From Macrostomum hystrix (Eukaryota > Animalia > Platyhelminthes), in NCBI GenBank assembly GCA_950097015.1, contig CATNEN010000041.1, forward strand, positions 1,364,001-1,428,000: a stretch of DNA of 64,000 bases, in the 5' to 3' direction. The position numbers were made by a program, and so were the translations under genes. The notes beneath the pieces were generated by a model. It did no database searches and was not told where the DNA came from. It saw only the letters and a list, made by a program, of their open reading frames with translations. Below, piece after piece: positions 2,886 through 36,029 of the stretch; position 1 is the stretch's first letter, and every line of letters begins with the position of its first letter.

Positions 2886-5556
2886 CGTAGGATACGTTGG
2901 ATTCTACGTTTGAATGTTCTTAGCTTTTTGTTTATTTTTTTTATAGTGCTACGTGAAGTTTTTCGGCGCCGCTTTGCGTTTTGAAGTAGTTTTCCGAGCC
3001 TTCTGCGTAGCGTTCTGCGATGTTTTTTTATTTCGAAGCGGGTAAAGCTTCTTTGCCTTGTGCGTAGCTGTTTTCTAGCATTCCTTCTGATTTTTCTGAG
3101 GAGTGTTTGAATTCTCTTTTTTAATACGTGACGTTTTGCAACTCCTCGGCAACATTTGTTTAGCTGTAGTTGTCTAACTTTTTGTCTGATTTTTCTGTTT
3201 ATTTGAAGTCTTATTCTTTTTCTTAATGAACGCCACTTTCTGTTAATTGTTCTCTTTAGTTTTCGCTCATATCGTTTTAATATCTTCTTTGTTTTTGTCC
3301 GAACAGCTCTGGACTTCAGGCGCCGAAGTCCATGTTGTAGCCTTTGGCACTTGCAGATCATATTGCCGCGAATGGTTACTTTGCTGCTTCTGCTATATCT
3401 AATGCGCCGTGTGATTGGCTTACGCGCTATCTTTGCTGCCTCTTTTGAGATGAGACCTTTTCGAAAGAAGGCTTTCTTGATGAGCCTGAGCCGATGTTTC
3501 GTCACTGGCTTCTTTTTGAGTTTTCGCATCACTCTTCGCTGATATCGTTTGTTTAACTTTGTCAGCCTTTTACCGAAGGCGCTCTGGACCTTGAAGATTC
3601 TCTTCTTGAAGCGCAAGACGCGCCGCTGAATCCTGGCCTTGTACCGCAGTCGCATCTGCTTGAGAAAATTTTGATAGAGTCGCTTCTTCTCGCGCAGCTT
3701 CTCATGGTAGAGCTTCAGCCTCATCAGAAGTAGCTTGGTCTCATACTTGGCCTTGTAGATTCGTTTGGCTGCCTCCATGATTTTGCGCTTATTGATTTCG
3801 CATTGCTGCGGAGACAGCTTCGTAGCTGAAAGTATTTTTACATGTACTTATTGGTCTCCGTGATTACGATTGGATATCGGTAGCTAAGTAAGATAGACTC
3901 CGATTGTGACGGCAATGCTTTTGAATAACTCTTACATGACAATGGTGAATGGAATGATATTGACAACTGAGATGAGCAAATGATATTTTTTCACTCTTCA
4001 TTGATTTTTGTAATTGCTGTCAGTGAACGAGAATGATGGCGATAATGATAGTTCATAGTGACAATTCAGCCTTGATGTGAGGACGAGGAGAGACCATGAC
4101 TCCCACGAAGGCTATGAAAAAAGAACATCTGAAAATTCAAAATGAGCACAGGTGTGGCCCGGATTATAAAAATTTGCTAATCGCAGATTGGGTTTACGTC
4201 GATAGAAACAGACAGCAGCAGCAGACTGATATATCCCAGTTAATTGCGCCCAATAGAGAAGTAAGCAAATATAGATACCTATACTCTGGATATCGGGATG
4301 CATAAATCTGGGAGAAAGTACAACAATAAGGAGCAAATTTTTAGTTTTTCTCGTGTCTTCTGTTTGCAGCTACGTAAAACGTAGCCACAGAATCACTGCA
4401 CCCCTATCACTGGCGCCCCAGGGACCTTTGAGGTAGTTCATGAACTCCAGGTTATCCGTCCGTCTTTCTTTATCGACGTATTCAGGATTTTGGGAAATTT
4501 AAAATGAAAACCTTCCTACGAAAGAACTGCCTCAGAAATGACATCTCTGGTTTACCGACCTTTTCAAGCCGTGAATTTATGAGCACATGCAGAATTCTTC
4601 CAGAAATTACACACGGCAACACGAAAATTGGTCATGAATGCGATCGGTAAGGAAAAATCAAGAAAAAAGAATTTCAAGATGGAGGTTGCGGTAAATTAGT
4701 TGGCAAAAAGTTGGCCAATGAGCGGAATGACTCACGCGCCCTGTAGCCGCTGTTGTAGACCCGGTTGCGCCATGCCCCGCCGCAGGTCAGGCCTGATTGG
4801 CCGCTGCACTTGGAGCTGCACTGCGAGTCCGGCGCCTTGCCGTAGCGGCCGTAGCTGTTGCCGCACCAGCACTCGCGCCCGGCCTGAGTGCCGGCATAGC
4901 GTAAACGCAGGCCGCGGCACAGTGCGGCGCAGGACTGCGGCGTGATGGAGCCAGAGCGCGCCAGCTTGGGCAGGTCGCGCGGCTTGAACTGGTCCTTATA
5001 GCAGCCGAGACTGGGCGGCGCGGCCGGGACTGCGGGTTTGACGGCGGCTTGATGTCAGATAACATTATTCACAGATTGATAACAGAGAGATTGATAGAAC
5101 CTGATCATCAGATCCTGATCAGACTTTCTTAGACCTGGTAAGCACTTTGGGTGACATTCTGAGGCCTGGTAAGCTCTTTGGGTGACATTCTGAGGCCTGG
5201 TAAGCTCTTTGGGTGACATTCATGAGCCTGATAAGCTCTTTGGGTGACATTCTGAGGCCTGGTAAGCACCTTGGGTGACATTCTGAGGCCTGGTAAGCTC
5301 TTGAGGTGAGATTCATGGGCCTGATAAGCTCTTGGGGTGAGATTCATGGGCCTGATAAACTCTCAACTTTTGATTCTTAGTGGCTGTTTTATAAAACTCT
5401 GGGTCGGTCTAGAATATTAGAATAGACTAGATTTCAGTAGGCAGGCTGAGGTCTTGAATGCGGCTTACCCGGTCCTCGGCGGCCCTGGATGCTGGCTCCC
5501 GTGGCGGACATTGCTGTCCAGCCGGCGAGAGCGACCAGCAGCAGCCAGATCCTCAT
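1..5556 (-). CDS. Secreted signal peptide-WSC domain-giant Arg/Ile/Val-rich repeat protein (gene A; 3' end lies beyond the window)
   Basis: Exons 5556-5469, 5047-4736 and 3825-<1, all joined in phase 1. Exon 1 is MRIWLLLVALAGWTAMSATGASIQGRRGP with donor GTAAGC. Exon 2 is a WSC domain (LGCYKD...CAALC...YAGTQAGRECWCGNSYGRYG...CSSKCSG...CGG.W.N.VY) with an AAG acceptor and GTGAGT donor. Exon 3 has acceptor TTTCAG and begins K/R-rich (TKLSPQQCEINKRKIMEAAKRIY...), followed by RRRRIIRRIVRRRRIVRRRRVIRRVI repeats. I found no stop in the unique segments or in the repeat blocks I read. At least ~1,400 codons. Confidence 0.85.
4736..5047 (-). CDS. WSC carbohydrate-binding domain exon of gene A
   Basis: 8-Cys WSC pattern GCY.D...C...C...Y.G.Q.G.ECWCG...C...C.G...CGG. 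The 312-nt exon is phase 1-1. Confidence 0.9.
5116..5355. repeat. Intronic minisatellite (~32-bp unit ctgaggcctggtaagctctttgggtgacatt) in gene A intron 1
   Basis: About 7 imperfect tandem copies are visible. Confidence 0.85.
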
Positions 5557-6139
5557 TGTGGTTCTGACAGCTGCTTCTGTTGCTTGTGAGATGCAAAGCT
5601 TGTTGGCCAAGTGATTGCTCAGCAAATTAGTTTCAAGATAGTCTTTTATCGCTACTGTTGGCGTTCCCTCCACTCACCGGTCAGGTTTGAGCAGAGAGTC
5701 GTCGGGAGTGAGCAGCGCCAGCCAGGAAGCAGCCACTTTTATCGGAACTGGGCCGGGGCGATACCCGCATTGTGGCCGAGCGGGCAGCAGCGGCGGTTTG
5801 CCAGCCACGCGCCACGCGGCTGATCTGCGAACCCCCGCCACCGGCCGCCAACCACCCGCGCCATCGCCATTCCTTAGTTAAAAAACCAGCTGGCCTGTGG
5901 ACACCGGAGCTTCTGCGAGTCCTCCCAACCCCCCCTGCTTTTGTCCCGCCTTGCGCTAGTCAAGAAGCAGCAGCGGCGGCGGCAGCAGCAGCGGCAGTGA
6001 GGCGGTACTGCTGCACTGAAGTCGCATTCTTCTCAGAGCTAAACGGAGACTAGGGCGCTTAACAGCCTTAACAGCCGAGTCCCCTCGCGCTTTCCGTTCT
6101 CCCTCCTGTCCGGAGACACCCGCGTCAAATTGCAAACTG

Positions 6140-6152
6140 TGCTGACTCAGCA
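6140..6152. promoter_or_regulatory. Perfect T-MARE palindrome TGCTGACTCAGCA upstream of gene A, overlapping a CAGGTG E-box
   Basis: Exact 13-bp Maf recognition element about 590 bp upstream of the gene A ATG. Function is untested. Confidence 0.35.
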
Positions 6153-6754
6153 GGTGGCCGTGGCGTCCGAATCGATGCTCGGCGTCACCCACCCAACTCC
6201 GCGCAGTCCGGCCCGAAAAATAGTTGTAGTTGGCGAATGAAAAAACTGCAAGTTAGTAAACTGGACACCCTCCACGATTTGCAGCTTGCTTCTGCTGCTG
6301 CTGCCGAGGGTAGGGAGGGGCTGTTTTTCAGAACATGCAGCGCTCCTGAATAACCCAGCCATCGAATTCAGCTGACGAAAGCTACTTCTGTTGCCAGAGA
6401 GGGGAGTAGTTTGGCTATGACAATTAATGCAGCCAGAAATCAATACGTTTTGAATACTCATTAAAAAACAAAGCGATCCTCAATAGGCCATGCCATACTG
6501 GCCATCCATTTGCAGATAAAGTGCGCGGAGTTATCGCACTGCTTCCGTCTCACTTTGAGCTGAGGATGAGCTGAGAGACCGAGATAATTCAAATCAGGTG
6601 ATGCCGCCTACTTGTGAGACAAGCCACGAAACTACGCGCGTCGCTAGCTAAAAGCTTTCCAAGAAACTGAAGCCATTTAACTTCATGACCATCCTGAGAA
6701 CTCATAAGATCATGATTTTTTTACCACAAACAAAAAATGATATGCGCGATAATG

Positions 6755-7270
6755 CTGACACCTGTATCACCAACTGCTGCTGACACACCTGTATCACCAA
6801 CTGCTGCTGACACACCTGTATCACCAACTGCTGCTGACACACCTGTATCACGTATCACCAACTTCTGCTGACACACCTGTATCACCAACTGCTGCTGACA
6901 CACCTGTATCACCAACTGCTGCTGACACACCTGTATCACCAACTGCTGCTGACACACCTGTGTCACCAACTGCTGCTGACACACCTGTATCACCAACTGC
7001 TGCTGACACACCTGTATCACCAACTGCTGCTGACACACCTGTATCACCAACTGCTGCTGACACACCTGTGTCACCAACTGCTGCTGACACACCTGTATCA
7101 CCAACTGCTGCTGACACACCTGTATCACCAACTGCTGCTGACACACCTGTATCACCAACTTCTGCTGACACACCTGTATCACCAACTGCTGCTGACACAC
7201 CTGTATCACCCAGCTCCTGTATCACCCAGCTCCTGTATCACCCAGCTCCTGTATCACCCAACTGCTGCTG
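6755..7270. repeat. 27-bp minisatellite (gacacacctgtatcaccaactgctgct), ~17 copies, intergenic
   Basis: Tandem copies explain the spurious QQQLVIQVC and DTGVSAAVG ORFs. Confidence 0.95.
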
Positions 7271-7763
7271 TTGCAATAGCTAGGTTCAACAGCAGGTATT
7301 TTCTGAACTGTGAAAGAAAAAAGACACAGACGAAGTACATTTTAAGGAAAATCTAATCTTAGAAGTACACTAAAGCCTACGTTTATTATCAGAATGAGCA
7401 GGCGGAGGTGCTTAAGCACTGACTAGCAAGCTAATGCGAGCCAACAACGGAAAGTAAAAAAAGAACATAAAATCGAATGCTATTAACAAAATTGATAAGA
7501 AAACAATTTTCTACTAATAAATAACTGCCTTTAATAAAATTAAAAGTACCAAGATGCAAAAATATGAAGGAAAGTATAGCAACGATGATTCTGAATAAGA
7601 CTAAATAATAAAATAAAATAAAACCGAACAGAAAGTTGGACAGAAATCTATCATATATTAAACAACAGCAAAGAGAATAAGCATTCTGTGAAGCTGTTCA
7701 GAATCTTCGGCATCAATACAGTCTTTAGTTAGAACTCTTTTCAGCTCTTGATGTCCAGTCATT

Positions 7764-10700
7764 TCAATAGGCGGCCGCGCTGCTCTGAAGCTGGCGCAGC
7801 TTCTCGATGAGCTGGGCCAGGGTGAGCATGGCCCGACCCAGGTGGAATAAAATGTCATTGAGCCAAGGTACAACGGCCTGGCCGTGGTACCGGCCGCTGA
7901 TGTCGTAGGACTTGGTGCGGGTGTTGTAGTGAAGAAAGTACACGGCCAGCACCAGACGGCGCCCGCTGACGTACATCGACAGGCTCATGTCGTTGGGCAC
8001 AGGCGGGTGGAACACCTCCTGGAGGACGGATCAATCGGGAATGACGTGGCAACGGTCATTCGGTCTGGCTTGCTAGTGACTTTATGCGGATATCATGAGC
8101 CAGCATTGAACAGATATCCATGAACACCTGTTAGACTGCCACCCAGAACACCTGTTAGACAGCCACCCAGAACACCTGTTAGACAGCGATCCAGAACACC
8201 TGTTAGACAGCCACCCAGAACACCTGTTAGACAGCCACCCAGAACACCTGTTAGACAGCCACCCAGAACACCTGTTAGATAGCGATCCAGAACACCTGTT
8301 AGATAGCCACCCAGAACACCTGTTAGATAGCCACCCAGAACACCTGTTAGACAGCCACCCAGAACACCTGTTAGATAGCGATCCAGAACACCTGTTAGAC
8401 AGCCACCCAGAACACCTGTTAGATAGCGATCCAGAACACCTGTTAGACAGCCACCCAGAACACCTGCTAGACAGCCACCCAGAACACCTGTTAGATAGCC
8501 ACCCAGAACACCTGTTAGATAGAGATCCAGAACACCTGTTAGACAGCCACCCAGAACACCTGTTAGATAGCCACCCAGAACACCTGCTAGACAGCCACCC
8601 AGAACACCTGCTAGACAGCCACCCAGAACACCTGTTTTACACCTTGTGTCGACTGTGCGCGAGTTCTTCAACCGATCGCTTCTGTGGCTGCACAACATGG
8701 TCCCTGGCCGACTTCAGGCAGGCGAAGATCCGATCCAGAGTCTGCAGTGCGGCGAGAGAGCGGGATGCTGGATCTGCACAAGCTCAGTGTGGACTGAAGG
8801 GCATCCGGGATGCTGGATCTGCACAAGCTCAGTGTGGACTGAAGGGCATCCGGGATGCTGGATCTGCACAAGCTTAGTGTGGACTGAAGGGCATCCGGGA
8901 TGCTGGATCTGCACAAGCTCAGTGTGGACTGAAGGGCATCCGGGATGCTGGATCTGCACAAGCTTAGTGTGGACTGAAGGGCATCCGGGATGCTGGATCT
9001 GCACAAGCTCAGTGTGGACTGAAGGGCATCCGGGATGCTGGATCTGCACAAGCTCAGTGTGGACTGAAGGGCATCCGGGATGCTGGATCTGCACAAGCTT
9101 AGTGTGGACTGAAGGGCATCCGGGATGCTGGATCTGCACAAGCTTAGTGTGGACTGAAGGGCATCCGGGATGCTGGATCTGCACAAGCTTAGTGTGGACT
9201 GAAGGCATCCGGGATGCTGGATCTGCACAAGCTTAGTGTGGACTGAAGGGCATCCGGGATGCTGGATCTGCACAAGCTTAGTGTGGACTGAAGGGCATCC
9301 GGGATGCTGGATCTGCACAAGCTTAGTGTGGACTGAAGGGCATCCGGGATGCTGGATCTGCACAAGCTTAGTGTGGACTGAAGGGCATCCGGGATGCTGG
9401 ATCTGCACAAGCTCAGTGTGGACTGAAGGGCATCCGGGATGCTGGATCTGCACAAGCTTAGTGTGGACTGAAGGGCATCCGGGATGCTGGATCTGCACAA
9501 GCTTAGTGTGGACTGAAGGGCATCCGGGATGCTGGATCTGCACAAGCTTAGTGTGGACTGAAGGGCATCCGGGATGCTGGATCTGCACAAGCTTAGTGTG
9601 GACTGAAGGGCATCCGGGATGCTGGATCTGCACAAGCTTAGTGTGGACTGAAGGGCATCCGGGATACTGGATCTGCACAAGCTCAGTGTGGACTGAAGGG
9701 CATCCGGGATGCTGGATCTGCACAAGCTTAGTGTGGACTGAAGGGCATCCGGGATGCTGGATCTGCACAAGCTTAGTGTGGACTGAAGGGCATCCGGGAT
9801 GCTGGATCTGCACAAGCTTAGTGTGGACTGAAGGGCATCCGGGATGCTGGATCTGCACAAGCTTAGTGTGGACTGAAGGGCATCCGGGATGCTGGATCTG
9901 CACAAGCTTAGTGTGGACTGAAGGGCATCCGGGATGCTGGATCTGCACAAGCTTAGTGTGGACTGAAGGGGGGTCGCGGATTCTCACCTCGAGCGTCCTG
10001 GTTGACTGCGAGTGGCAGCCGATCTCGCAGGCCTGTTGGATGCTGAACTTGGCTGCCTGTAGCGTGCTGCCGCAGCTGATCAGCTGTTTTCATTTGCGGG
10101 TTCTTTGTAGATAAACGTTTCGAAACAATTTTGCCTGAGTTCAAGGCCGAGTGCAAGAAGTCCGAACTGCTATAGTCTATCTAAATAGTCAGCTAATTTC
10201 ATTTTCATGCAATTTTTTCACTCAAACCATTCAATAGAACTTCTGTGCCTTTCAAATCGAGCCGCCATGAGCTCCTGGCAGAACTGGCACATTCCGGATT
10301 CAAAAACATGTCCAGCTATAAAATTTTTGTTTACAGGGCAACTAAGATCCCATAGAAATGGTTGTGTAAGCAAGTCACAAAAATGGCCAAACACAGAATA
10401 ACAACTCGCGCGCATTACGGGGCTGGCCATTGTGTGAGGGGCAAAGCTTGCTTCGCTTTTTAATTTCAGCTGCTCCTTTGCAATGCACTGGCAGTTGGGT
10501 TGGGGCAGTGGCTAAGAGATCACGCCATTTTGGGAGAAGTCACAGCATTGCTGCGTGAACTGAACGCGGGGAACTTTAAAAAAACTGCATTTTTCTTATG
10601 GTAACCACAACAGTCTATAAGAGTTCGAAATCTGACCTGGGATTCGAATGTTGTTGAGGATCTGGGATTCGAATGTTGTTGAGGATCTGGGACTTGACTG

Positions 10701-11344
10701 TCGTTGAGGATCTGGGATTCGAATGTTGTTGAGGATTTGGGATTCGAATGTTGTTGAGGATCTGGGATTCGACTGTTGTTGAGGATCTGGGATTCGAATG
10801 TTGTTGAGGATCTGGGATTCGACTGTTGTTGAGGATCTGGAATTCGACTGTCTTTGAGGATCTGGGATTCACCTAGTGTCAGTGTCAGTGCCCAGTGTCA
10901 CCTACCTGCTGCAGCTTGTAGGAACAGCCGTCACTAATGGAGCACCTGTAAAACTGTTTAAATGGACTCTCGACGCTGATGTCCTGTAAGGCAGAGAATG
11001 TATTTTGATGTATATTTATTAGCTTGATTCATTTTGCTCAATGGGTAACAGAAGCGTTTAGGGCTTCAGGAGAGTCAGGGCTAACTCACCGCCTCTGTGA
11101 TCTCATCACCACTTAGATTTACAACAGCTTTCAGGCTGCACTGTCTAAAATTGATTCGATTGATTCAAGTCACAATCACAGCTTAAAAATACGTAATGAA
11201 TATAAACAGTGCTCACTCATTTGGAGTAAACAAGAACTTGCTGGCTGGCTGGGCTAGCTTCTTTTCGCATTGGTCAACAATAACTAGCAGCTGCTGTAGG
11301 GTGGCAACATACTCCCGGTCTAGAAGCCATGATAGCTCATCCAT
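7764..11344 (-). CDS. ROGDI: ROGDI (Rabconnectin-3/RAVE-associated leucine-zipper protein) homolog, ~236 aa from the first visible ATG
   Basis: Exons 11344-11217, 11144-11090, 10983-10906, 10083-9988, 8741-8643 and 8018-7764 total 711 nt with consistent phases. Recognised motifs: ELSWLLDREYVATLQQL, LKAVVNLSGDEITEADI, YKLQQL, VFHPPVPNDM...YV...RLVLAVYFLH and VVPWLNDIL. A short upstream exon may exist. AATAAA lies at 7387-7382. Confidence 0.88.
8122..8637. repeat. 24-bp intronic minisatellite (gaacacctgttagacagccaccca), ~21 copies
   Basis: Fills the last ROGDI intron. Confidence 0.95.
8761..9970. repeat. 45-bp intronic minisatellite (gggcatccgggatgctggatctgcacaagcttagtgtggactgaa), ~27 copies
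   Basis: Near-identical copies in a ROGDI intron. Source of the spurious WTEGHPGCWICTSLV ORFs. Confidence 0.97.
10635..10870. repeat. 25-bp intronic minisatellite (gaggatctgggattcgaatgttgtt), ~9 copies
   Basis: Tandem copies in a ROGDI intron. Confidence 0.9.
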
Positions 11345-12999
11345 AGCTGCTGAGAAATGTTAAATTGACAATAAAGTTATGACTTAAATGTTTATTAAAG
11401 ATGTTTTGATCTGTTTAAAGATATCCTTTTGCTAAAAACAGCATTTTGTTACAGAGTTGAAATAAAAAAAGCAAGCACAAAGCATTTTTTAATTAATTAT
11501 TACAAAGGTAAAGAGTAATTCAGAACTAGTAGTTTAATATAATTGTATTTAAACTAAATATGCATGGTTGTTTCAGAGTAGATCGCTTAAAACTAAGGTA
11601 TATATCATATCTCAATTATTAATGGAAATGTTTGTATACTGTAAAAAATATTAACAAGTATATATTATATTTATATATACAAGTAGTAGCAAAGTTCTTC
11701 TAATACAATGCAATGTTTCATTTAATAGGATTTATGCTAACCAACTTATAGCTATAACAAAAATTAATCAGCTGCATCATTCCTTCTAAATCAATAACTA
11801 TGTCATAAAATGTTCAACCATAATTTTATTTGCATCATCACTTTGATTGCAACTACAAAAGAATAAAGAATAATTTTATTTTAAACTAAATTCATTAGAT
11901 ACAGTGGAATAAAAATCTTGAATTTCATACCCAGTTTAAGTATTGTAAAATAAAATAAAAACTTTGTGTGTCACATGGTTAGCCTGAATATTCTAAATCT
12001 AGTAATGATGAAATGATAATAAGAAATTACTACTTATATTATATTTTATTCCCTGTTAGAAAGTTTTGTTTACATTAACTATAGCTACTTAGTCTTACGC
12101 CTAAGAATATTCAATTTCTATATTTGGTAACCCTCCAAATTCCACACTTATGTCTAAATACCTCTTAGAGACTAAAAAGGCTAAGCTTGATTCATTGTTA
12201 AAATTTCTTAAAGCGCCACAACGTGTCTATTCCATAGGTATATGCAGTGTCTAAATAAATAAACGAACTGCTTAATTGCACTAAATCATTTATTGCTACA
12301 CTATAAGTCTATATAGATTTTTCATCCAGTCGCGGGGACATGACCAAGACCAAGAGTACACGAAGTAAATATACATGTTTCTGGGAAAAAATTATTGATT
12401 AAAAAAGGACCAGAACTACGCATGCGATAAATCAAATGAACTTTAATATATCTTAAAGTATACTATAAATTCAACAAGGCCGCTATAATAAGTATAAATT
12501 TCTATAGGCTTCTATCAGGGTATTATATATATTCTCATATAGCTTCTAAGTAAAAAGGCCAGTATTTTAACTTTGCTCTATTCTGCAAATTACAGGTCCC
12601 GTCAAGCTGGCCCTCAGTCGATAAATTTGCTATGTAGGGCTGGCTAGGTCGTCTTGTCATCTTATATGAACCACCGAAAATTATCTGTCATAAACAAACT
12701 GTTCCTGCGCATAGCCATGCAGTATAAGTATACAGCGTTGAGTGTTTCCAGAAGTGTGAAAACCGAGCGGGTATTTAAAAGTTAGGCAGTTAGCTAACAG
12801 TAACACTTGTCTAACTTATATATAATTCATTTCATTTAGTCAATTCATTTCCGACGGGTTAGCAAGTAACAAGTAACATTTTTTGTTATGCAATTAGCTT
12901 ATTACACTAAGTTAATAGCTAGTTCTATAGATAGCTTGCAAGTTGGATATTTTTCGTCACTTCATATCCTCCAGTTACTTGAGAATTTACTGCTTCGTA

Positions 13000-17770: not shown

Positions 17771-20700
17771 TCAGAAGCGTGTCCGGCGGACATGTCCGTG
17801 ATGCTGCTGCTGCCGGTGCGGCCTGGGCGGGCCGGAGCTGCGCCAGACGGCCTGCTTGAAGTTCGGAAGGGCGCCAGACCTGCTGCTGCTTCTCGACGAC
17901 TCTGAGTCGTCGTCTTCAGCGTCCCCGAACTCGTCGCTCCTGGCGATGGCCGGCGATCTGGTGAGAAATTCGGGCACCTCCTGGTTGCAGGCGCGCAAAA
18001 CCTGCTGAAGGTCCCGACGAATGTCCTTGGAGGCCAGATCCCTGTTCGTCAGGAAGGTCACGGCGCGGCCGGGTCGGCCTAGACGGCCAGTGCGGCCCAC
18101 CCGGTGAATGTACTGGTCAATGTACTGCGGAGCGTCAAAATTCACCACCAGGCTGACGCCAGGCAGGTCTAGGCCACGCGCGGCGACGTCGGTGGCCACC
18201 AGGACGCGGCTCCGACCGCTTTTGAAGCTCTCCAAGGACATCTGGCGGGTCTGGAATGGGGGGAAACTTATCTAGTTCGAACTTTAATTTAACACTGCGA
18301 ATCATGATCGTCCCTGTGGTCTGAAGCTCTCCGAGTCTAAGACAGCGGCGATCATGTTCACCAGCAAAAACAAATGGCATATTCGCCCCCTCCAGCTGTA
18401 TGGAAAGGACATCACCTTCCAGAAGCAAACTAAATGCTTGGGCATAACGCTCGATCACAGGCTCAGCTGGACTCCTCATGTCCACGCTAAAGCCAAAAAG
18501 GCCTTTGCGATCCTGGCGCAGCTGCGCAGGGCGGTAGGCAACACTTGGGGTCTCACCCCCAAACGCCTTTGGTGGATCTACACTGCTATGGTCAGACCGG
18601 CTGTTTCGTACGCCGGACTGATCTGGGCTAGCGCCCTGCAGCTAAAGACCTGCCATGAGACTCTTTGGAGAGTGCAAGGTCGCGCATGTCGCATGATCAT
18701 GAGCGCCCCGTTATCCGCCCCCTTCGATGGCCTCAGCGCCTTCCTGAACATCTTCCCGCTTGATATCTTTATCCGCGGTGAGGCGGCAAAAACCGCCCGG
18801 CGTCTCCTTGATGCCGGTGTGCGCTTCGTCCCCCAACGAGCGGCAGCGAAACGAAAGCTCCTGCCGCACACGGACCTTTGCCTGAGAGATTTGGGCGCGA
18901 GCAATGGAATCAATGTCCTCACGGACGGTGAACCGTGCACGCTCAACCTCTTTCAGCGCTTCAAAGTTCTCATCCCCACCAGGGACCAAGCTAGCGACCA
19001 CTGGAACACTCAGGAGGTCCACTGCTACACGGACGGATCCATGAAGGATGGCTCCGCTGGCTTCGGGGTCTGTATCCTAATCAACGGACGTGTTGTCGCC
19101 ACACACGCCCAACACACTGGAAACTCCTCGAGCGTTTTCCAGAACGAGGTCCTGGCCATCAGCTCCTGCGCTGCGGAGTTGAATGAGAAAAACATCTCAG
19201 GCAGGACTATCATCTTTCACTCGGACAGTCAGGCTACTCTGCAAGCCCTCTGTCACACCACCACAACCTCCCGGACAGTCTCCGACTGTGTCCGGCAGCT
19301 CAATAACCTGGCCGGTAAGAATACCGTCAGACTTCAGTGGATACCAGGGCATGCCGGTTTCCCTGGAAACGAGCTTGCTGACTACCTGGCCAAGCAGGGA
19401 GGCGCCAGCTCTGCGCCGGGCCCCTCCCCCCGGCTCCGATTCCGAACACCGTCATCTATCGTCAGATCAATGACTGGACCGCCAACCTCCATCTTACCCG
19501 GTGGAGAAGCACCACTAACTGCCGCCAATCCAAAGCGGCAGTTTCAGTGCCATCCACTCGGCGCCGGAAGGTCCTTCTAAACCAGATCCGGGCCCTCACC
19601 ATGACCCTCACGGGCCATGGCTGCTACGCCAGACACTTTCCTCCGTGGAGACCTCCGGAGTGAGCTGTGCCCGTTCTGCAACCTTGAGACGAGGATGCCC
19701 TGCACTTCGTCTGTCACTGCCCTTTCTTCACCAGAGAGAGGCTTAATTACCTCGGACCAAACCCATCCATGGACGATGTTTGCAGATCCGAGAACATCCC
19801 GCGGCTCGTCCGGTTCCTAAGGGCTACCAGACGAGCCTCTTTCTTCCCCAGCGAGGAACAAGCTGCAGGAAGGACCGAACACGGACCTCCCTGACTGGCC
19901 CCGCGCGATCGGCCGACTGCGGGTCTTTCAGGGATTAGCGGAATGGGCGACTCCCGCCTCCCCGTTGTGTCCATCGGACCGCCCTGCAGATAAGTCAAGT
20001 AAGTCAAGTCATGATCGTCCCAAGCTAAAATTAGCTCGTATTTTTCGAATTATTGCGACCTGTAAAATCGCTGATAAATTGCTTATCTGAAAAGCCAAAG
20101 ATCTGCCAGGGGAGACCCAGCTGCTCACCATCTGCCGCATGTCGCCGTGGAGGGCGACGGCGGCAACTCCGCCGGTCTCCAGCCGCCTGAGCAGCTGGCT
20201 GGCGCCCAACTTGGTCTGCACGAACACCAGGCAGCGCTCGTCATCACCCAACTCGGCTAGCAGGCGGCGCAGCGAGTCGAGCCGTGTGGCTTCGCCGGCG
20301 CCATCCAGGAGCAGCAGCTGCTGGCGGATGCCGGCCGGCACCGGGCCGGACTCGGCGCCGTGGCCGGCCAGGACTGAGATGCGCGCGTCCGGGCGGAGCA
20401 GATTGCGCACAATGCGAGCCACGTCTGGCGGGAATGTGGCTGAGAACAGCGAGGTCTGGCGGCCGGATGCGGGCGGCGGGCCAAACTCCTGGCTGGTGAT
20501 GATTCGGCGAATGTCTCGCTCGAAGCCCATGTCTAAGCAGCGGTCGGCCTCATCCAGTATGAGCTGGCGGCAGGCGCTCAGCGACAGGATGCCGCGCTGC
20601 AGAAAGTCCAACAGGCGGCCGGGTGTCGCAACGGCGATGTGGGCGCCCTCGTTCAGGATCTGCGGGGTCGGAGGCGGAGCTCAGACAGCTGGACTGGTCT

Positions 20701-24834: not shown

Positions 24835-24971
24835 AGTGGCGTAGCGAGGAATTTTCGATGGGGGATTAAATGAAAAAACTGAACGAACAATAAAAAAATG
24901 GACTGTATATTAATAGCAATACTCCCCCTTTCAACTCTCCCACAATTTTTCTGCCGCTTGGGGACGCCACT
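24835..24971. mobile_element. Possible small MITE remnant
   Basis: AGTGGCGT at 24835 and its reverse complement ACGCCACT ending at 24971 bound a short, slightly GC-richer island in AT-rich DNA. No TSD was confirmed. Confidence 0.25.
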
Positions 24972-26812: not shown

Positions 26813-29800
26813 ATGCAGCTGGCAATGACTGGACTGCTTCTGCTCAGCCTGCTGGCGCTGTGCCACGGCGGCAGCTTAATACAGGGACTGCGACCCGAGT
26901 TCTGTGAGTTCACAATGTACTTTTGACAACCGGGTTTTTTGCTGTCCATACATCTCCTTGGCAAGGCAGCACCACGGCTGATTTAGGAGGCCATTGGGGG
27001 TTGGGCACTGATTTCACTGGTCTATTTTCTGGCATTGCTTAGTTTCTGAGCAAAATCTGTTAGTCAGGAGCTTCTGAATCTCATAATGCCTAATGTTTTC
27101 ACATGTTTTCAGCTAAAAAACTACCGATAAGCTACGGCTGCTTTAAGGACCACAGCGGCGCTCGCGACCTGACTGTGCTGGCCAAGAAGGGCTTCGTGAC
27201 CGCCCACGGCTGCATGTACCTCTGCAGAGGCATGGAGTACAAACTGTTCGGCCTGCAGAACGGCAGCGAGTGCTGGTGCGGCAACTCGCACGGCCGGCAT
27301 GGCAGGGCCAAACTCGCCAACTGCAACCTCAGCTGCACCGGCGACCGCAGGCAGAACTGCGGCGGCAAGCTGCACAACCGAATCTACCCCACCAGTGAGT
27401 ACTGACTGACTGACTGACTGACTGACTGACTGACTGACTGACTGACTGACTGACTGACTGACTGACTGACTGACTGACTGACTGACTGACTGACTGATGA
27501 GTGGATGAGTGGATGAGTCCTTGCTGAGCTCATAATGAAAATGATTTCCGCAATGGCCTTTCAGAGCATGCGAGGGCCAGGAAGGGTGAGTTTATGCAGC
27601 TCTCTATCTATCTATTTGCAGGGGGGCCCGGGGCACTTGTCGCACAAGCGACGGAGCGGCACGCCCCCAGACCGGCGAACTAGGCGCTTAGCGCCCATCG
27701 CGCCGCCTCCCCTGAGCAGGCACCACACACAGCAGCACAGACCAGCCGGGAGGGCAGGGAGGGCAGGAGGCACCCAGAATAGGCAGCAGCGCACCCACCC
27801 CAGCCCCACACGCGCAGAGCACCGAAATTAATCGGGACTTGAAGGGAGAATCGAACTAGCGTCCATTGGAGTAAGAGGCAGCGACGCTAGCCGCTGACCC
27901 ACTCGCCCCTTGTTTATGCAGCTCAGTCGTGGCCTAAAAGCTGCACACCGGTCCCATTTATTGAAAAGCAATGATAGCAACAACCACCTAATATTGCAGC
28001 GATCCTAATTGCCGATAGATCACCTTCACTTTCTTCTAAATCGAAAGGCTCAGGTGAGTCCATTGCCAGGTGCTCAAGCTGCGAGATGTCCTCAAAGTTC
28101 TAATCAAAGTTGAGCACTCACCCGCCAAAACCGCACAAACTACTCTTGCAGGTAGCCGACAGAAACTAAAACTGAAAATCAAAGTGAAGGGAAGGAACAA
28201 AAGAAGACCGGTGGTTGTGAAGAAGATAAAAGTACAGAACAATCAGCAGCGAACTGCGAAACTGAGCAAGTCGGGGCAAAGGCATGGACTGCAACTAGGT
28301 TTGCGATTCCACGGCGGCCTGCAAGTTCAGAGGCCAGTATGGAAGGTAAAGAAGGTGAAAAAACGCAGCCAGAAGTTAAAGCTGAAAATAAAAAACAGAA
28401 GGAAGCCAAAGTTTCACCAGCTGCTGGCAGGTGGCAGACATTTCAGAAGCCAAGTTTTTGCAACAAAAAAGAAAAAACTGTCCGTAAAGCTCCTCGACCG
28501 AAACGGCAGCAAGTCAAGAGGAAAGAAGGGCGGCAAGTGGAGAGGAAAGAAAAACGGCAAGTGGAGATTCAAGAAGGGCGGCAAGTGGAGAGGAAAGAAG
28601 GGCGGAAAGATCCGCGTCAAGATCGGCGGCAAGTGGAGATTCAAGAAGGGCGGCAAGTGGAGAGGAAAGAAAAACGGCAAGTGGAGATTCAAGAAGGGCG
28701 GCAAGTGGAGAGGAAAGAAAAACGGCAAGTGGAGATTCAAGAAGGGCGGCAAGTGGAGAGGAAAGAAGGGCGGCAAGTGGAGATTCAAGAAGGGCGGCAA
28801 GTGGAGAGGAAAGAAAAACGGCAAGTGGAGATTCAAGAACAGCGGCAAGTGGAGAGGAAAGAAGGGCGGCAAGTGGAGATTCAAGAAGGGCGGCAAGTGG
28901 AGAGGAAAGAAGGGCGGCAAGTGGAGAGGAAAGAAGGGAAGAAAGATCCGCGTCAAGATCGGCGGCAAGGGGAGATTCAAGAAGGGGGGCAAGTGGAGAG
29001 GAAAGAAGGGCGGCAAGTGGAGAGGAAAGAAAAACGGCAAGTGGAGATTCAAGAAGGGCGGCAAGTGGAGAGGAAAGAAGGACGGAAAGATCCGCGTCAA
29101 GATCGGCGGCAAGGGGAGATTCAAGAAGGGCGGCAAGTGGAGAGGAAAGAAGGGCGGCAAGTGGAGAGGAAAGAAAAACGGCAAGTGGAGATTCAAGAAG
29201 GGCGGCAAGTGGAGATTCAAGAAGGGCGGCAGGTGGAGAGGAAAGAAGGGAAGAAAGATCCGCGTCAAGATCGGCGGCAAGGGGAGATTCAAGAAGGGCG
29301 GCAAGTGGAGAGGAAAGAAGGGCGGCAAGTGGAGAGGAAAGAAAAACGGCAAGTGGAGATTCAAGAAGGGCGGCAAGTGGAGATTCAAGAAGGGCGGCAG
29401 GTGGAGAGGAAAGAAGGGAAGAAAGATCCGCGTCAAGATCGGCGGCAAGTGGAGATTCAAGAAGGGCGGCAGGTGGAGAGGAAAGAAGGGAAGAAAGATC
29501 CGCGTCAAGATCGGCGGCAAGTGGAGATTCAAGAAGGGCGGAAAGTGGAGACTCAAGAAAGGCGGCAAGTGGAGAGGAAAGAAGGGAAGAAAGATCCGCG
29601 TCAAGATCGGCGGCAAGTGGAGATTCAAGAAGAGCGGCAAGTGGAGATTCATGAAGGGCGGCAAGTGGAGAGGAAGGAAGGGAAGAAAGATCCGCGTCAA
29701 GATCGGCGGCAAGTGGAGATTCAAGAAGGGCGGCAAGTGGAGAGCCAGGAATGGTGACAAGAAGCGCAGAAGCGGAAGTCGAAGTGGAAGGAAGCTGCAC

Positions 29801-32800
29801 AACAGAATGGCCTTTGGTGTCACCATGAAGGCTCGCGGCCGAGGTCTACGAATCAAGTGGAAGGCATTAAAGAGCAAAAGGCAAAGCCGCGGAACGAAAA
29901 GTAGCAAAAAACTAGCAAAGCATTTTGGTGCCCTGCTGGGCGGCCGTCAAAAGGGCGGAATCATCTTTGCGAAACAGAAGCGCAAGTTCTTAATTAAGTC
30001 TGGTTCAAGGATTAGGCTCGGTGCAAAGTTGAGCAAAAGGAGGAGGGGACGCGGGAGAAGGAGAGGACGCGGGAGGAGGAGAGGACGCGGGAGAAGGAGA
30101 GGACGCGGGAGGAGGAGAGGACGCGGGAGAAGGAGAGGACGCGGGAAGAGGAGAGGAGGCGGGAGGAGGAGAGGACGCGGGAGGAGGAGAGGACGCGGGA
30201 GGAGGAGAGGACGCGGGAGAAGGAGAGGACGCGGGAGGAGGAGAGGACGCGGAAGAAGAGAAAGAAAGCTCAAGGGCATTGTCTCTGGTGTTACCGTTAA
30301 AAGAGGATTAAGAGTCAAGCGAATAAAATGGAAGGTTATTAAGTCCAAACGAAGAGTTAAAAGAAAAGAAACTATCAAAAGGCAATATCTAGCTCTCCTT
30401 GGCGGCACCGGTAAAGGCGGAATAATTTTTGCGAAGAAAAGGCCAAAGCTTACCGTCAACGCTAACCACAGAAAAAGCGCTCGAAAGCATGTCAAACTTG
30501 GTGGAAAGAGGACAGGAAGGAAGGGAAGAAAGATCCGCGTAAAGATCGGCGGCAAGTGGAGATTCAAGAAGGGCGGCAAGTGGAGAGGAAAGAAGGGCGG
30601 CAAGTGGAGAGGAAAGAAGGGAAGAAAGATCCGTGTCAAGATCGGCGGCAAGTGGAGATTCAAGAAGGGCGGCAAGTGGAGAGGAAGGAAGGGAAGAAAG
30701 ATCCGCGTCAAGATCGGCGGCAAGTGGAGATTCAAGAAGGGCGGCAAGTGGAGAGGAAAGAAGGGAAGAAAGATCCGCGTCAAGATCGGTGGCAAGTGGA
30801 GATTCAAGAAGGGCGGCAAGTGGAGAGGAAAGAAGGGCGGCAAGTGGAGAGGAAAGAAGGGCGGCAAGTGGAGAGGAAGGAAGGGAAGAAAGATCCGCGT
30901 CAAGATCGGCGGCAAGTGGAGAGGAAGGAAGGGAAGAAAGATCCGCGTCAAGATCGGCGGCAAGTGGAGATTCAAGAAGAGCGGCAGGTGGAGAGGAAAG
31001 AAGGGAAGAAAGATCCGCGTCAAGATCGGTGGCAAGTGGAGATTCAAGAAGGGCGGCAAGTGGAGAGGAAAGAAGGGCGGCAAGTGGAGAGGAAAGAAGG
31101 GCGGCAAGTGGAGAGGAAGGAAGGGAAGAAAGATCCGCGTCAAGATCGGCGGCAAGTGGAGAGGAAGGAAGGGAAGAAAGATCCGCGTCAAGATCGGCGG
31201 CAAGTGGAGATTCAAGAAGAGCGGCAAGTGGAGAGGAAAGAAGGGAAGAAAGATCCGCGTCAAGATCGGCGGCAAGTGGAGATTCAAGAAGGGCGGCAAG
31301 AGGAGAGGAAAGAAAGGAGGCAAGTGGAGAGGAAAGAAGGGAGGCAAGTGGAGAGGAAAGAAAGGAGGCAAGTGGAGAGGAAAGAAGGGAGGCAAGTGGA
31401 GAGGAAGGAAGGGAAGAAAGATCCGCGTCAAGATCGGCGGCAAGTGGAGATTCAAAAAGAGCGGCAAGTGGAGAGGAAAGAAGGGAAGAAAGATCGGCGT
31501 CAAGATCGGCGGCAAGTGGAGATTCAAGAAGGGCGGCAAGTGGAGATTCAAGAAGGGCGGCAAGTGGAGAGGAAGGAAGGGAAGAAAGATCGGCGTCAAG
31601 ATCGGCGGCAAGTGGAGATTCAAGAAGGGCGGCAAGTGGAGATTCAAGAAGGGCGGCAAGTGGAGAGGAAGGAAGGGAAGAAAGATCGGCGTCAAGATCG
31701 GCGGCAAGTGGAGATTCAAGAAGGGCGGCAAGTGGAGATTCAAGAAGGGCGGCAAGTGGAGATTCAAGAAGGGCGGCAAGTGGAGAGGAAGGAAGGGAAG
31801 AAAGATCGGCGTCAAGATCGGCGGCAAGTGGAGATTCAAGAAGGGCGGCAAGTGGAGAGGAAAGAAGGGCGGCAAGTGGAGAGGAAGGAAGGGAAGAAAG
31901 ATCCGCGTCAAGATCGGCGGCAAGTGGAGATTCAAGAAGGGCGGCAAGAGGAGAGGAAAGAAAGGAGGCAAGTGGAGAGGAAAGAAGGGAAGAAAGATCC
32001 GCGTCAAGATCGGCGGCAAGTGGAGATTCAAAAAGAGCGGCAAGTGGAGAGGAAAGAAGGGAAGAAAGATCGGCGTCAAGATCGGCGGCAAGTGGAGATT
32101 CAAGAAGGGCGGCAAGTGGAGATTCAAGAAGGGCGGCAAGTGGAGAGGAAGGAAGGGAAGAAAGATCCGCGTCAAGATCGGTGGCAAGTGGAGATTCAAG
32201 AAGGGCGGCAAGTGGAGAGGAAGGAAGGGAAGAAAGATCCGCGGCAAGATCGGCGGCAAGTGGAGAGGAAAGAAGGGCGGCAAGTGGAGAGGAAAGAAGG
32301 GCGGCAAGTGGAGAGGAAAGAAAAACGGCAAGTGGAGATTCAAGAAGGGCGGCAAGTGGAGTGGAAAGAAAAACGGCAAGTGGAGATTCAGGAAGGGCCG
32401 CAAGTGGAGAGGAAGGAATGGAAGAAAGATCGACATTAAGATCGGCGGCAAGTGGAGATTCAAGAAGGGCGGCAAGTGGAGAGGAAAGAAGGGAAGAAAG
32501 ATCCGCGTCAAGATCGGCGGCAAGCGGAGAGGAAAGAAGGGCGGCAAGTGGAGAGGAAAGAAAAACGGCAAGTGGAGATTCAAGAAGGGCGGCAAGTGGA
32601 GAGGAAGGAAGGGAAGAAATATCCGCGTCAAGATCGGCGGCAAGTGGAGAGGAAAGAAGGGCGGCAAGTGGAGAGGAAAGAAAAACGGCAAGTGGAGATT
32701 CAAGAAGGGCGGCAGGTGGAGAGGAAGGAAGGGAAGAAAGATCGACATTAAGATCGGCGGCAAGTGGAGATTCAAGAAGGGCGGCAAGTGGAGAGGAAGG

Positions 32801-35800
32801 AAGGGAAGAAAGATCCGCGTCAAGATCGGCGGCAAGTGGAGATTCAAGAAGGGCGGCAAGTGGAGAGGAAAGAAAAACGGCAAGTGGAGATTCAAGAAGG
32901 GCGGCAAGTGGAGAGGAAAGAAGGGCGGAAAGATCCGCGTCAAGATCGGCGGCAAGTGGAGATTCAAGAAGGGCGGCAAGTGGAGAGGAAAGAAAAACGG
33001 CAAGTGGAGATTCAAGAAGGGCGGCAAGTGGAGAGGAAAGAAGAACGGCAAGTGGAGATTCAAGAAGGGCGGCAAGTGGAGAGGAAGGAAGGGAAGAAAG
33101 ATCCGCGTCAAGATCGGTGGCAAGTGGAGAGGAAGGAAGGGAAGAAATATCCGCGTCAAGATCGGCGGCAAGTGGAGAGGAAAGAAGGGCGGCAAGTGGA
33201 GAGGAAGGAAGGGAAGAAATATCCGCGTCAAGATCGGCGGCAAGTGGAGAGGAAAGAAGGGCGGCAAGTGGAGAGGAAGGAAGGGCGGCAAGTGGAGAGG
33301 AAGGAAGGGAAGAAATATCCGCGTCAAGATCGGCGGCAAGTGGAGAGGAAAGAAGGGCGGCAAGTGGAGAGGAAGGAAGGGCGGCAAGTGGAGAGGAAGG
33401 AAGGGAAGAAATATCCGCGTCAAGATCGGCGGCAAGTGGAGAGGAAAGAAGGGCGGCAAGTGGAGAGGAAGGAAGGGCGGCAAGTGGAGAGGAAGGAAGG
33501 GAAGAAATATCCGCGTCAAGATCGGCGGCAAGTGGAGAGGAAAGAAGGGCGGCAAGTGGAGAGGAAGGAAGGGCGGCAAGTGGAGAGGAAGGAAGGGAAG
33601 AAAGATCCGCGTCAAGATCGGTGGCAAGTGGAGAGGAAGGAAGGGAAGAAATATCCGCGTCAAGATCGGCGGCAAGTGGAGAGGAAAGAAGGGCGGCAAG
33701 TGGAGAGGAAGGAAGGGAAGAAATATCCGCGTCAAGATCGGCGGCAAGTGGAGAGGAAAGAAGAACGGCAAGTGGAGATTCAAGAAGGGCGGCAAGTGGA
33801 GAGGAAGGAAGGGAAGAAAGATCCGCGTCAAGATCGGTGGCAAGTGGAGAGGAAGGAAGGGAAGAAATATCCGCGTCAAGATCGGCGGCAAGTGGAGAGG
33901 AAAGAAGGGCGGCAAGTGGAGAGGAAGGAAGGGAAGAAATATCCGCGTCAAGATCGGCGGCAAGTGGAGAGGAAAGAAGGGCGGCAAGTGGAGAGGAAGG
34001 AAGGGCGGCAAGTGGAGAGGAAGGAAGGGAAGAAATATCCGCGTCAAGATCGGCGGCAAGTGGAGAGGAAAGAAGGGCGGCAAGTGGAGAGGAAGGAAGG
34101 GCGGCAAGTGGAGAGGAAGGAAGGGAAGAAATATCCGCGTCAAGATCGGCGGCAAGTGGAGAGGAAAGAAGGGCGGCAAGTGGAGAGGAAGGAAGGGTGG
34201 CAAGTGGAGAGGAAGGAAGGGAAGAAATATCCGCGTCAAGATCGGCGGCAAGTGGAGAGGAAAGAAGGGCGGCAAGTGGAGAGGAAGGAAGGGCGGCAAG
34301 TGGAGAGGAAGGAAGGGAAGAAATATCCGCGTCAAGATCGGCGGCAAGTGGAGAGGAAAGAAGGGCGGCAAGTGGAGAGGAAGGAAGGGCGGCAAGTGGA
34401 GAGGAAGGAAGGGAAGAAATATCCGCGTCAAGATCGGCGGCAAGTGGAGAGGAAAGAAGGGCGGCAAGTGGAGAGGAAAGAAAAACGGCAAGTGGAGATT
34501 CAAGAAGGGCGGCAAGTGGAGAGGAAAGAAGGGCGGAAAGATCCGCGTCAAGATCGGCGGCAAGTGGAGATTCAAGAAGGGCGGCAAGTGGAGAGGAAAG
34601 AAGGGAAGAAAGATCCGCGTCAAGATCGGCGGCAAGTGGAGATTCAAGAAGAGCGGCAAGTGGAGAGGAAAGAAGAACGGCAAGTGGAGATTCAAGAAGG
34701 GCGGCAAGTGGAGAGGAAGGAAGGGAAGAAAGATCCGCGTCAAGATCGGCGGCAAGTGGAGAGGAAAGAAGGGTGGCAAGTGGAGAGGAAAGAAGGGAAG
34801 AAAGATCCGCGTCAAGATCGGCGGCAAGTGGAGATTCAAGAAGGGCGGCAAGTGGAGAGGAAAGAAAAACGGCAAGTGGAGATTCAAGAAGGGCGGCAAG
34901 TGGAGAGAAAAGAGGAGCGGTGTCGGTCGTGGATCGGTGAGACTGGAGTCTAAAGTAGTCAGAAAATACGCCTCGCTGTTGGGTGGAGCGGCTAAGGGCG
35001 GCATTGTGTTTGCCAAGCGAAAGCCAAAGTTTGTTGTGAAGTCAAAGAGCTCTGGTGGTGGTGCATCTGTGAGGTCAGGCAAAGTTAAAGTTTCCGCTGT
35101 AAACAACAGATCCGGTTCAGCTACTTCTTCTTCTGCAGTTGCAGGTGAGTCCGAATTGTCTATGAGTCTCTATGCCGTTCAATTGCTTCAAGGTTTACCC
35201 CAAGCATCGCTGTTGGATCCACTTTCAGTCGGCGACTCATCTTCGTCGTCCATTTCATCCGGTTCGAGTTCTCGTGAGTTGCATTTAACTTAAATAACTT
35301 TATTTCAAGAAGTTAACTTTATTATAGAAAGTTGTGGTTCAATAACTTCTAGACACTTCCTCATCAATTGACGCTGGCGGACGGACAGGTAAAACTGTTC
35401 ACCATAACTTTCTATGCTGTAATAGCTGACTAATGAGCGTTGACGAAGATTATTCAGCACTTTCGATTGCCGCCTATTTCAGAGGTCAAGACCATCACAA
35501 GCGTGGAGACGAAGACTTTTGAGTGTGAGTAACGCTTTTTCCGGTCTCACCCGCAATCTGAGCTGATCCTCTGAGCCGCTTCTGGCCCCATTCCTTTGTT
35601 TTGGACCAATCTTGTCCTTGGTTCCTTATGACTGGACCCTAGAAAGATTAGCTTACACCCACCCCGAATCCGCTTCACATTATTGGCTCCAACGTATTCA
35701 GCGTCCACCCACCTCACCGCTGCATTGTCCGTTCAGCGGAGGCCGCTGGTCTCGGCTGTTTCAAGGACTCGGCAACTGCCCGCGACCTTCCATTTAGCGC

Positions 35801-36029
35801 CAGCTTCAGCGGCCCGATGACCGTTGAGAAGTGCATGCAGGCCTGCGCAGACAAGAAGCACCGCTATTTCGGACTGCAGGCTGGCAGCCAGTGCTGGTGC
35901 GGCGACTCGTATGGCAAGCACGGCGGGCCAGTGGATGACGCCCAGTGCAACCAGAAGTGCAGCGGCAACAGCAGCCAGGTCTGCGGTGGCACCCTATTCA
36001 ATAGCATCTTCGACTCTGGCAAGCGCTGA
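26813..36029 (+). CDS. Secreted signal peptide-WSC-giant Lys/Arg/Gly/Trp octapeptide-repeat-WSC protein (gene B, ~2,584 aa)
   Basis: Exons 26813-26903 (MQLAMTGLLLLSLLALCHGGSLIQGLRPEF), 27113-27394 (WSC), 28000-28053, 28152-35144 (6,993-nt open exon), 35483-35524 and 35737-36029 (WSC, stop). All junctions are phase 1 with GTGAGT donors and YAG acceptors. The exons sum to 7,755 nt (2,585 codons). AATAAA lies at 36124-36129. Confidence 0.88.
27113..27394 (+). CDS. N-terminal WSC domain exon of gene B
   Basis: YGCFKD...CMYLC...FGLQNGSECWCGNSHG...CNLSCTG...CGGKLHNRIY. Confidence 0.92.
27401..27496. repeat. (ACTG)n microsatellite, ~24 copies
   Basis: Starts immediately after the GTGAGT donor of the WSC exon. 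Confidence 0.97.
28525..34910 (+). repeat. Coding 24-bp (octapeptide) repeat arrays GGKWRGKK / GGKWRFKK / GRKIRVKI, plus an 18-bp RRRGRG block at ~30040-30260
   Basis: Two arrays (~28525-29745 and ~30505-34910) lie inside the giant exon. Only this frame is open across the unique linkers. Confidence 0.95.
35737..36029 (+). CDS. C-terminal WSC domain exon of gene B
   Basis: GLGCFKDSATARDL...MTVEKCMQAC...YFGLQAGSQCWCG...CNQKCSG...CGGTLFNSIF. Confidence 0.92.

Follow-up and report, generated by a model that had tools for sequence, protein, structure and literature searches.

Two neighbouring Macrostomum hystrix genes predicted to encode giant secreted polycations with WSC domains

Giant secreted polycations are already known from flatworms. 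In Macrostomum lignano, the protein Mlig-ap1 (adhesion protein 1) has lysine- and arginine-rich regions that exceed 3,600 residues and have an isoelectric point of about 14.5 (Wunderer et al., 2019; PMC6410801). Attachment is blocked by heparin and release is blocked by cations, and the role proposed for this protein is the binding of anionic glycans (PMC6410801). A separate polycation protein, ap3, occurs in proseriates and polyclads and was reported not to be found in macrostomids; in Minona ileanae and Theama mediterranea it consists of a signal peptide and a GRK(HS) polycation, with 3,700 residues in Tmed-ap3 (PMC9229212). In addition, the prostate-limited and seminal-fluid candidates of M. 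lignano include proteins that carry one WSC domain or two (RNA815_80.4, Mlig-pro46; PMC4490696; PMC6953679; PMC5977470 supplement). Here, we describe two neighbouring genes, A and B, in a window of 64,000 nucleotides (nt) from the genome of Macrostomum hystrix (contig 41, positions 1,364,001-1,428,000), in which a secretory leader and one or two WSC domains are predicted to be joined to a single giant exon for a polycation.

Both genes are like Mlig-ap1 in that they come from the same genus and would encode a giant secreted polycation of the lysine/arginine type together with a carbohydrate-binding domain, a likeness drawn from descriptions. While Mlig-ap1 has C-type lectin, vWD/C8/TIL and 17 EGF domains between its lysine/arginine-rich flanks and no WSC domain, WSC is the only Pfam domain in the pieces of the A and B exons that were scanned (the middles of the repeat arrays lay outside the scan), and the repeat units differ as well. 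Gene B also recalls ap3, in composition and by description, through its signal peptide and huge glycine-, arginine- and lysine-rich block (K 28%, G 25%, R 18%); ap3 is without folded domains, whereas gene B carries a pair of WSC domains, and so falls outside the ap3 definition, and contains 8% tryptophan. Gene A is unlike ap3 in being rich in arginine, isoleucine and valine rather than in glycine, arginine and lysine, and in having a WSC domain and a tail. The WSC proteins among the M. lignano prostate and seminal candidates likewise come from Macrostomum, are secreted and carry a single WSC domain or two; those are tail-gland products for which no giant polycation has been reported, and their transcripts have no established link to A or B.

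The WSC family of Pfam (PF01822) includes the yeast Wsc sensors, fungal glucanases, polycystin-1, KREMEN and WSCD1/2. The domains of A and B resemble this family in matching its profile well above the gathering cut-off of 27.8 bits, and the eight conserved cysteines, read from the translations, are present in all three of them (A, B first and B second: GC..., ...C..LC, ECWCG,.C...C,.CGG). A WSC domain joined to a giant polycation is described neither in the literature found nor in the WSC proteins just named, and we know of no glycan ligand for an animal WSC domain. In the databases, the orthologues of gene A are only partial entries, labelled 'hypothetical' or 'WSC domain-containing'.

Two genes with giant polycation exons

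The M. hystrix assembly holds 220,453,370 bases in 42 contigs (published as ~220 Mb in 42 contigs; PMC10468722), and homology searches were run on it one exon at a time, the exons being kept apart rather than joined into a spliced protein for search or fold. We consider, with a probability of roughly 0.62, that A and B are divergent real genes for giant secreted proteins in which WSC domains accompany a coding-minisatellite polycation, that they share an architecture while a specific common origin of the two is undemonstrable, that their diversity would have arisen by in-place turnover of repeats and shuffling of WSC exons, and that the products would be gland-granule polycations that bind anionic glycans. 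Within this reading, the existence of A and B as real multi-exon genes for secreted proteins of this build is supported by the gene models, by relatives in M. lignano and by the pattern of substitutions, and the two layouts run strikingly parallel. As the initial annotation had proposed, the splice sites of both genes give the order of signal exon, phase 1-1 WSC exon and giant basic exon, the signal exons having 29 and 30 codons (88 and 91 nt, each with one further nucleotide, phase 1). The signal-exon and WSC peptide strings that it quoted are present in the translations, and the repeats are indeed unrelated (R/I/V-rich 96-nt units in A, GGKWRGKK 24-nt units in B), the polycation arrays having expanded independently. 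All splice sites of the gene models are canonical GT/AG, and all phases are compatible.

In gene A (coordinates in Table 1), the first exon encodes a signal-peptide-like leader, MRIWLLLVALAGWTAMSATGASIQGRRGP, and the WSC exon matches PF01822 with 68 bits (E 8.4e-19). The giant exon has a total length of 23,823 nt, of which the first 3,825 nt lie in the window and about 20 kb beyond its left edge, where it was read on the contiguous genomic DNA of contig 41 and not on a spliced join. It is open for 7,941 codons up to a phase-1 donor (TTG/GTGAGA) at contig position 1,344,003; in a separate genome-wide search for open frames, the frame of gene A measured 7,953 codons. Arginine makes up 51% of the encoded block, isoleucine 17% and valine 16.5%; its net charge is +4,328 and its mass about 1.05 MDa. 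The block opens with a unique and basic N-terminal part, after which come R/I/V-rich repeats of 32 residues (96-nt units), and the array is built from ten super-repeats of 32-residue units (RRRRVIRRVIRRRRVIRRRRIIRRIVRRRRIV) with spacers of about 250 residues. On the 3' side of the giant exon lie 11 small phase-1 exons, which encode a threonine-, serine- and glycine-rich tail and end in TAA; the exon directly after the giant exon has 42 nt, and the module VKTVNPDGSxSWTETS recurs in the tail. No further WSC domain for gene A was found by tblastn within 20 kb downstream.

The strand opposite the gene A repeats is open too. At 1070-2239 of the window (plus strand) and over the rest of the array, it reads as an acidic serine/aspartate-rich repeat, DDSSASDDSSDHSSPPHDASS, with 389 open codons, and another frame, rich in arginine, threonine and methionine, stays open over as many as 4,567 codons. 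These opposite frames showed neither a start nor signal or splice evidence, and are probably by-products of composition.

Gene B faces the other way and has internal exons that are phase 1-1 throughout. Its giant exon has a tryptophan content of 7.6% and a net charge of +1,076, and contains 8-residue units of the GGKWRGKK type (24 nt), an RRRGRG block and three spacer modules, which are diverged copies of one another (LLGGxxKGGI[IV]FAK). In the gene model, the giant exon is spliced in phase toward WSC exons at both of its ends, and the second of the two WSC domains is the top-scoring match genome-wide among the at least 436 candidates of the Pfam profile search. Word searches of protein collections with the unique N- and C-terminal parts of gene B gave no match, and a full HMMER scan with its first WSC domain returned multi-WSC proteins only, at no more than 45% identity, the sampled hits being unrelated multidomain proteins. 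A microsatellite, (TGAC)n with about 24 copies, occupies window positions 27403-27497, a few bases past the donor of the first WSC exon.

A paralogue of gene A, here A', is found on contig 29, where it was read to position 6099055 without 883 nt at 6092157-6093039. Its giant exon starts at 6,089,752. In the 1.4 kb read upstream of that exon there is no WSC exon, so the A' signal exon is most likely spliced straight to the giant exon. Past the giant exon come a 48-nt micro-exon, two WSC exons and at least two VKTVNPDGSTSWTETS modules, and the VKTVNPDGSxSWTETS tail module is shared with A. Over their N-terminal 300 residues the two giant exons are 49-51% identical (E 1e-59 to 1e-81); over the last 160 residues, at the C-terminus, the identity is 34% (E 1e-25). 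The arginine-rich repeats of A', in contrast, are 18-residue RRRLTRRLSRRRSTRRVS and 10-residue RRTGRRRVLV units instead of the 32-residue units of A. In the genome searches, queries with the unique ends of A and with its tail module match only A and A', and the close database relatives of gene A are from M. lignano only; the A family is small, consisting of A' and the M. lignano orthologues. One change of frame occurs within about 8 nt of the A' giant exon (contig 29, ~6,094,560-6,094,590, near 6,094,580), where one frame meets a TAA and another continues; this may be an assembly error or a genuine defect.

A and A', the only pair of certain homology, have kept stable giant-exon ends and a stable tail, and the repeat units and the positions of the WSC exons have changed. 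The initial annotation had pictured a conserved secretory and glycan-binding chassis carrying exchangeable payloads. The pair departs from that picture, since it keeps the giant-exon ends and the tail while its WSC exons have been relocated, and its pattern fits lectin exons of phase 1-1 that were shuffled around a fast-evolving coding minisatellite rather than a fixed chassis with a swapped payload.

Coding status and kinship of the two genes

The giant exons might in principle be non-coding minisatellites that lack stops by chance, the real genes then being small proteins of signal peptide and WSC domain. Non-coding minisatellites abound in the window, and composition leaves very long alternative frames open too, with as many as 4,567 codons on the strand opposite A and as many as 1,719 in the B repeat region, so that openness is weak evidence for coding. 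Within the repeats, moreover, the synonymous bias is weak and short of significance (p 0.06 for A, 0.17 for B), and the splice model of gene B is read from the genomic sequence only; both points count against our reading. Outside the repeats, however, the evidence runs the other way. Four M. lignano proteins, all partial (A0A1I8GNH5, A0A1I8HKC0, PAA63193.1, PAA48566.1), begin with MRLWLLLLILAVWAAMSANGAS and run on from signal peptide through WSC domain into the start of the giant exon; their WSC/giant-exon junction coincides with that of the gene A model, and their identity to A is 70-74%, with 74% for one of them in the N-terminal part of the giant exon. In A', both unique ends of the A giant exon (N- and C-terminal) are kept under purifying selection, the proportion of nonsynonymous differences (pN) between A and A' being 0.335 against a proportion of synonymous differences (pS) of 0.84, at which synonymous sites are saturated. 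In gene B, pN lies far below pS among the spacer modules (0.37-0.42 against 0.73-0.83). Phase-compatible splice sites on both sides of both giant exons lead to more coding exons, and the repeat periods of the two are all multiples of 3. A non-coding origin of the giant exons is, on this evidence, very improbable.

The initial annotation had gone further and read A and B as one family, in part on the likeness of their WSC domains. These do align: the WSC exon of A and the first WSC exon of B (68 and 61 bits against Pfam) are 47% identical over 88 residues without a gap. At least 436 candidate WSC matches are present in the M. hystrix genome, however, most of them within extensive tandem arrays of contigs 1, 7 and 39, and the likeness has to be judged against them. 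From the fetched loci 118 domains were extracted, of which 90 are distinct. In the alignment of these 90, A and B are 42.7% identical; the median of A against all others is 42.6%, B ranks 41 of 89, and pairs taken from different contigs have a median of 41%. The identity of A to B thus equals the background median, and the motifs quoted for both domains are family consensus, so that this likeness fails as proof of a family. The nearest relatives of the WSC domains in A, A' and B are copies in the arrays: with A as query, array copies stand on top at 51-55% identity and B is about twentieth at 45%, and with the first WSC domain of B as query, A ties for third place at 46%, behind array copies at 50-52%. 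The test that had been suggested, a search for a clade of A and B, neither joins nor separates the two. The maximum-likelihood tree does not pair them, placing A beside a singleton of contig 1, C1_24582708 (support 66/78), and the first WSC domain of B beside two array copies of contig 39 (90/31). The approximately unbiased (AU) tests reject no grouping, and with a domain of 96 columns they have no power. A clade of A with the second WSC domain of A' is retained in them as well (p 0.34).

The WSC exon arrays themselves lie on contig 1 (8.45-8.50 Mb), contig 7 (5.91-5.94 Mb) and contig 39 (10.68-10.71 and 12.92-12.94 Mb), and the contig 7 array includes some near-identical units of about 1.7 kb. 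Polyarginine open frames are many genome-wide, and none lies near the best 150 of the 436 WSC candidates, which is a lower bound and not a full scan.

Several observations hint that A and B are kin, and would suit the explanation that both descend from one signal-WSC-polycation ancestor by local inverted duplication, with the payload replaced or diverged, so that A, A' and B form one family. The two genes are adjacent and divergent, and their exon order and phases are the same. Their signal exons are alike in length (A 88, B 91, A' 91 nt), and in comparison with codon-shuffled controls the signal-exon DNA gives a z-score of 2.75 for A and B, comparable to the 3.2 for A and A' (0.95 for B and A'; comparison with one unrelated signal exon gave about -0.4 to -0.8), a likeness that hints at kinship and falls short of proof. 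In all three genes the giant exon is followed by a micro-exon (A 42 nt, B 42 nt, A' 48 nt); the 14-residue micro-exon of B is weakly like the A tail module (order-shuffle p 0.03-0.045, uncorrected for several tests), and the C-terminal WSC domain of B recalls the layout of A'. The AU tests also keep a clade of the A and B WSC domains (p 0.46) and one that unites the five polycation-linked WSC domains (p 0.20), again with the 96 columns that give them no power. Common descent from such an ancestor nonetheless appears unlikely, given the background-level WSC identity and the free tree described above. Outside composition, the non-repeat parts of the B giant exon match A or A' with a best E of only 9.8, while A and A' have retained theirs, and the A tail module and both unique ends match only A and A'. 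No similarity was seen between the intron and upstream DNA of A and B, the DNA likeness being confined to the WSC exon. Nor do the similar endings of the signal exons serve as a family mark, as had been claimed, since GASIQGRRGP of A corresponds to GASLSSLPAKK in the M. lignano orthologue, where "IQG" is gone. Upstream of A, A' and B, the search for common motifs gave one 8-mer, GTCAGCAC, at unrelated distances from the start codons, which is not convincing.

What A, B and A' have in common is an architecture, namely an 88-91 nt phase-1 signal exon, a giant phase 1-1 polycation exon and one or more flanking phase 1-1 WSC exons. As signal and WSC exons are generic phase-1 modules, with hundreds of WSC exons in the genome, the link between A and B is generic, and the shared architecture is not specific enough to prove descent. 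We therefore keep to the reading of two real genes of like build, for which a specific common origin is not demonstrable from the sequences at hand.

The locus and its other features

The divergent genes A and B have start codons that are 21 kb apart, with three genes between them (Table 1). The initial annotation had named these as ROGDI, a Delta-like gene and a helicase around which A and B face outward. The divergent orientation and the DEAD-box helicase stand. The ROGDI match remains below the cut-off: a whole-genome Pfam search for ROGDI gave no match in the window, and the exon is seen weakly on direct scan alone. As to the Delta-like label, the middle gene has EGF matches only, and no DSL or Delta-specific domain was seen in it with Pfam; it is called an EGF/transmembrane gene here.

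Table 1. Exons of genes A and B, the signal exon of A' and the genes between A and B (window positions unless a contig is named; a slash marks the splice junction).
Feature	Position	Strand	Description
Gene A exon 1	5556..5469	-	start ATG; 88 nt, 29 codons + 1; phase-1 donor G/GTAAGC
Gene A exon 2, WSC	5047..4736	-	312 nt; phase 1-1; acceptor caag/CC, donor C/GTGAGT
Gene A giant exon	3825..1 in window, on to contig 41 position 1344003	-	phase-1 acceptor tttcag/CT
Gene B exon 1	26813..26903	+	91 nt, 30 codons + 1; phase-1 donor; signal-peptide-like leader MQLAMTGLLLLSLLALCHGGSLIQGLRPEF
Gene B exon 2, first WSC	27113..27394	+	282 nt; phase 1-1; PF01822 61.3 bits
Gene B giant exon	28152..35144	+	6,993 nt, 2,331 codons; phase 1-1; donor GCAG/GTGAGT
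Gene B micro-exon	35483..35524	+	42 nt; phase 1-1; canonical AG/GT; encodes EVKTITSVETKTFE; inferred from sequence only
Gene B terminal exon, second WSC	35737..36029	+	PF01822 82.1 bits; stop TGA 36027-36029
ROGDI-like exon	7764..8015	-	Pfam E 4.9e-5, below cut-off
EGF/transmembrane gene	13.4-16.6 kb		EGF matches only
DEAD-box helicase	17.8-22.2 kb	-	
A' signal exon	contig 29, 6,089,195-6,089,285		91 nt, phase 1

Four minisatellites lie in the introns or flank of the ROGDI-like gene, at 6758-7210, 8122-8636, 8761-9970 and 10637-10870, with periods of 27, 24, 45 and 25 bp, respectively, the 45-bp one having 27 copies at 98% identity. Inside the helicase gene, on the opposite strand, an open frame of 408 residues (18354-19580, plus strand) has RNase H and reverse-transcriptase-like domains and is probably the remnant of an intronic retroelement. 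Just 3' of the gene B stop, a single open frame of 152 residues (36449-36907, plus strand) has a DM9 repeat (PF11901, E 1.4e-27) and forms a separate small gene. It is followed by a 25-bp minisatellite at 37903-40748 with 114 copies and a 95% match; as 25 is not a multiple of 3, this gives one 25-residue peptide in all three plus-strand frames, with about 960 open codons, and the array looks non-coding. Two ordinary neighbours complete the window, a gene for an M13 (neprilysin-type) peptidase (41900-45127, plus strand) and an open frame of 717 residues (59251-61404, plus strand) that is rich in proline, serine, alanine and glutamine and contains one C2H2 zinc finger. High GC, a genome of 220 Mb and the WSC expansion might suggest a brown alga; this reading is rejected, given the animal genes of the neighbourhood (DM9, M13 peptidase, DEAD-box helicase) and the M. 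lignano orthologue of gene A.

Putative role and meaning for Macrostomum

In the mechanism that we propose, a secretory leader, one or more WSC domains and one giant phase 1-1 exon, which would be a coding minisatellite for a polycation, make up a protein that may be packed with a polyanion in gland granules. The extreme positive charge suggests as much, since the secretory pathway would need a polyanion to neutralise such a polymer. After release, the protein would attach to and condense glycans or surfaces of negative charge, the WSC domain serving as a specific glycan anchor, and over evolutionary time the repeat blocks would diversify by in-place turnover and the phase 1-1 WSC exons would be shuffled. 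By analogy with the glue proteins ap1 and ap3, the likely role is that of a polycation secreted by a gland and binding to anionic glycans.

As to the material that A and B would belong to, a glue-like or cohesive gland product is possible, at somewhat less than an even chance, and a reproductive secretion is rather unlikely on its own account; a part in defence or mucus seems improbable, and any other role more so. WSC proteins are frequent among the M. lignano prostate and seminal-fluid candidates, which makes the prostate a weighty alternative, and by this analogy glue would not be favoured over a reproductive role. It had also been suggested that A and B are co-secreted as a two-component material. 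As stated this is unlikely, because two polycations repel each other, and each would more plausibly be paired with an anionic partner.

Giant polycations are central to ap1 and ap3, the sole molecular model of reversible animal glue; their genes assemble poorly from short reads, and stand-alone ones have been reported missing in macrostomids. The long-read assembly gives complete genes, one with a 23.8-kb exon for a polyarginine block of about 1 MDa together with a lectin-type domain, and a second with a lysine/glycine/tryptophan block. With 7,941 residues in one exon and 51% arginine, gene A would encode what is, to our knowledge, the most arginine-rich giant protein. Against the background of secreted flatworm polycations, it is the 1-MDa polyarginine exon and the A/A' pattern that are striking, while the claim of an A-B family is unproven. 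A caution follows for such comparisons in general, as with hundreds of domain copies per genome, a motif-level likeness of two of them is not evidence of a special relationship. The A/A' pair, by contrast, displays block evolution directly, with ends kept, repeat units replaced and lectin exons moved.

RNA interference and in situ hybridisation work in Macrostomum. If expressed in adhesive or prostate glands, A and B would be candidates for a function in cohesion, granule packing or the ejaculate, and their charge blocks are possible templates for biomaterials. Tentatively, as a view that we hold at less than even odds, A, A' and B may form a class of secreted polycations specific to Macrostomum, of megadalton size and with glycan anchors, in which the minisatellite blocks would be re-invented repeatedly from new units while WSC exons are shuffled; the ap3-like cohesive polycations that are missing from macrostomid glue or ejaculate would be provided by this class. 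If this is true, the class would offer a natural series for the evolution and phase separation of charge-block polymers with anionic glycans.

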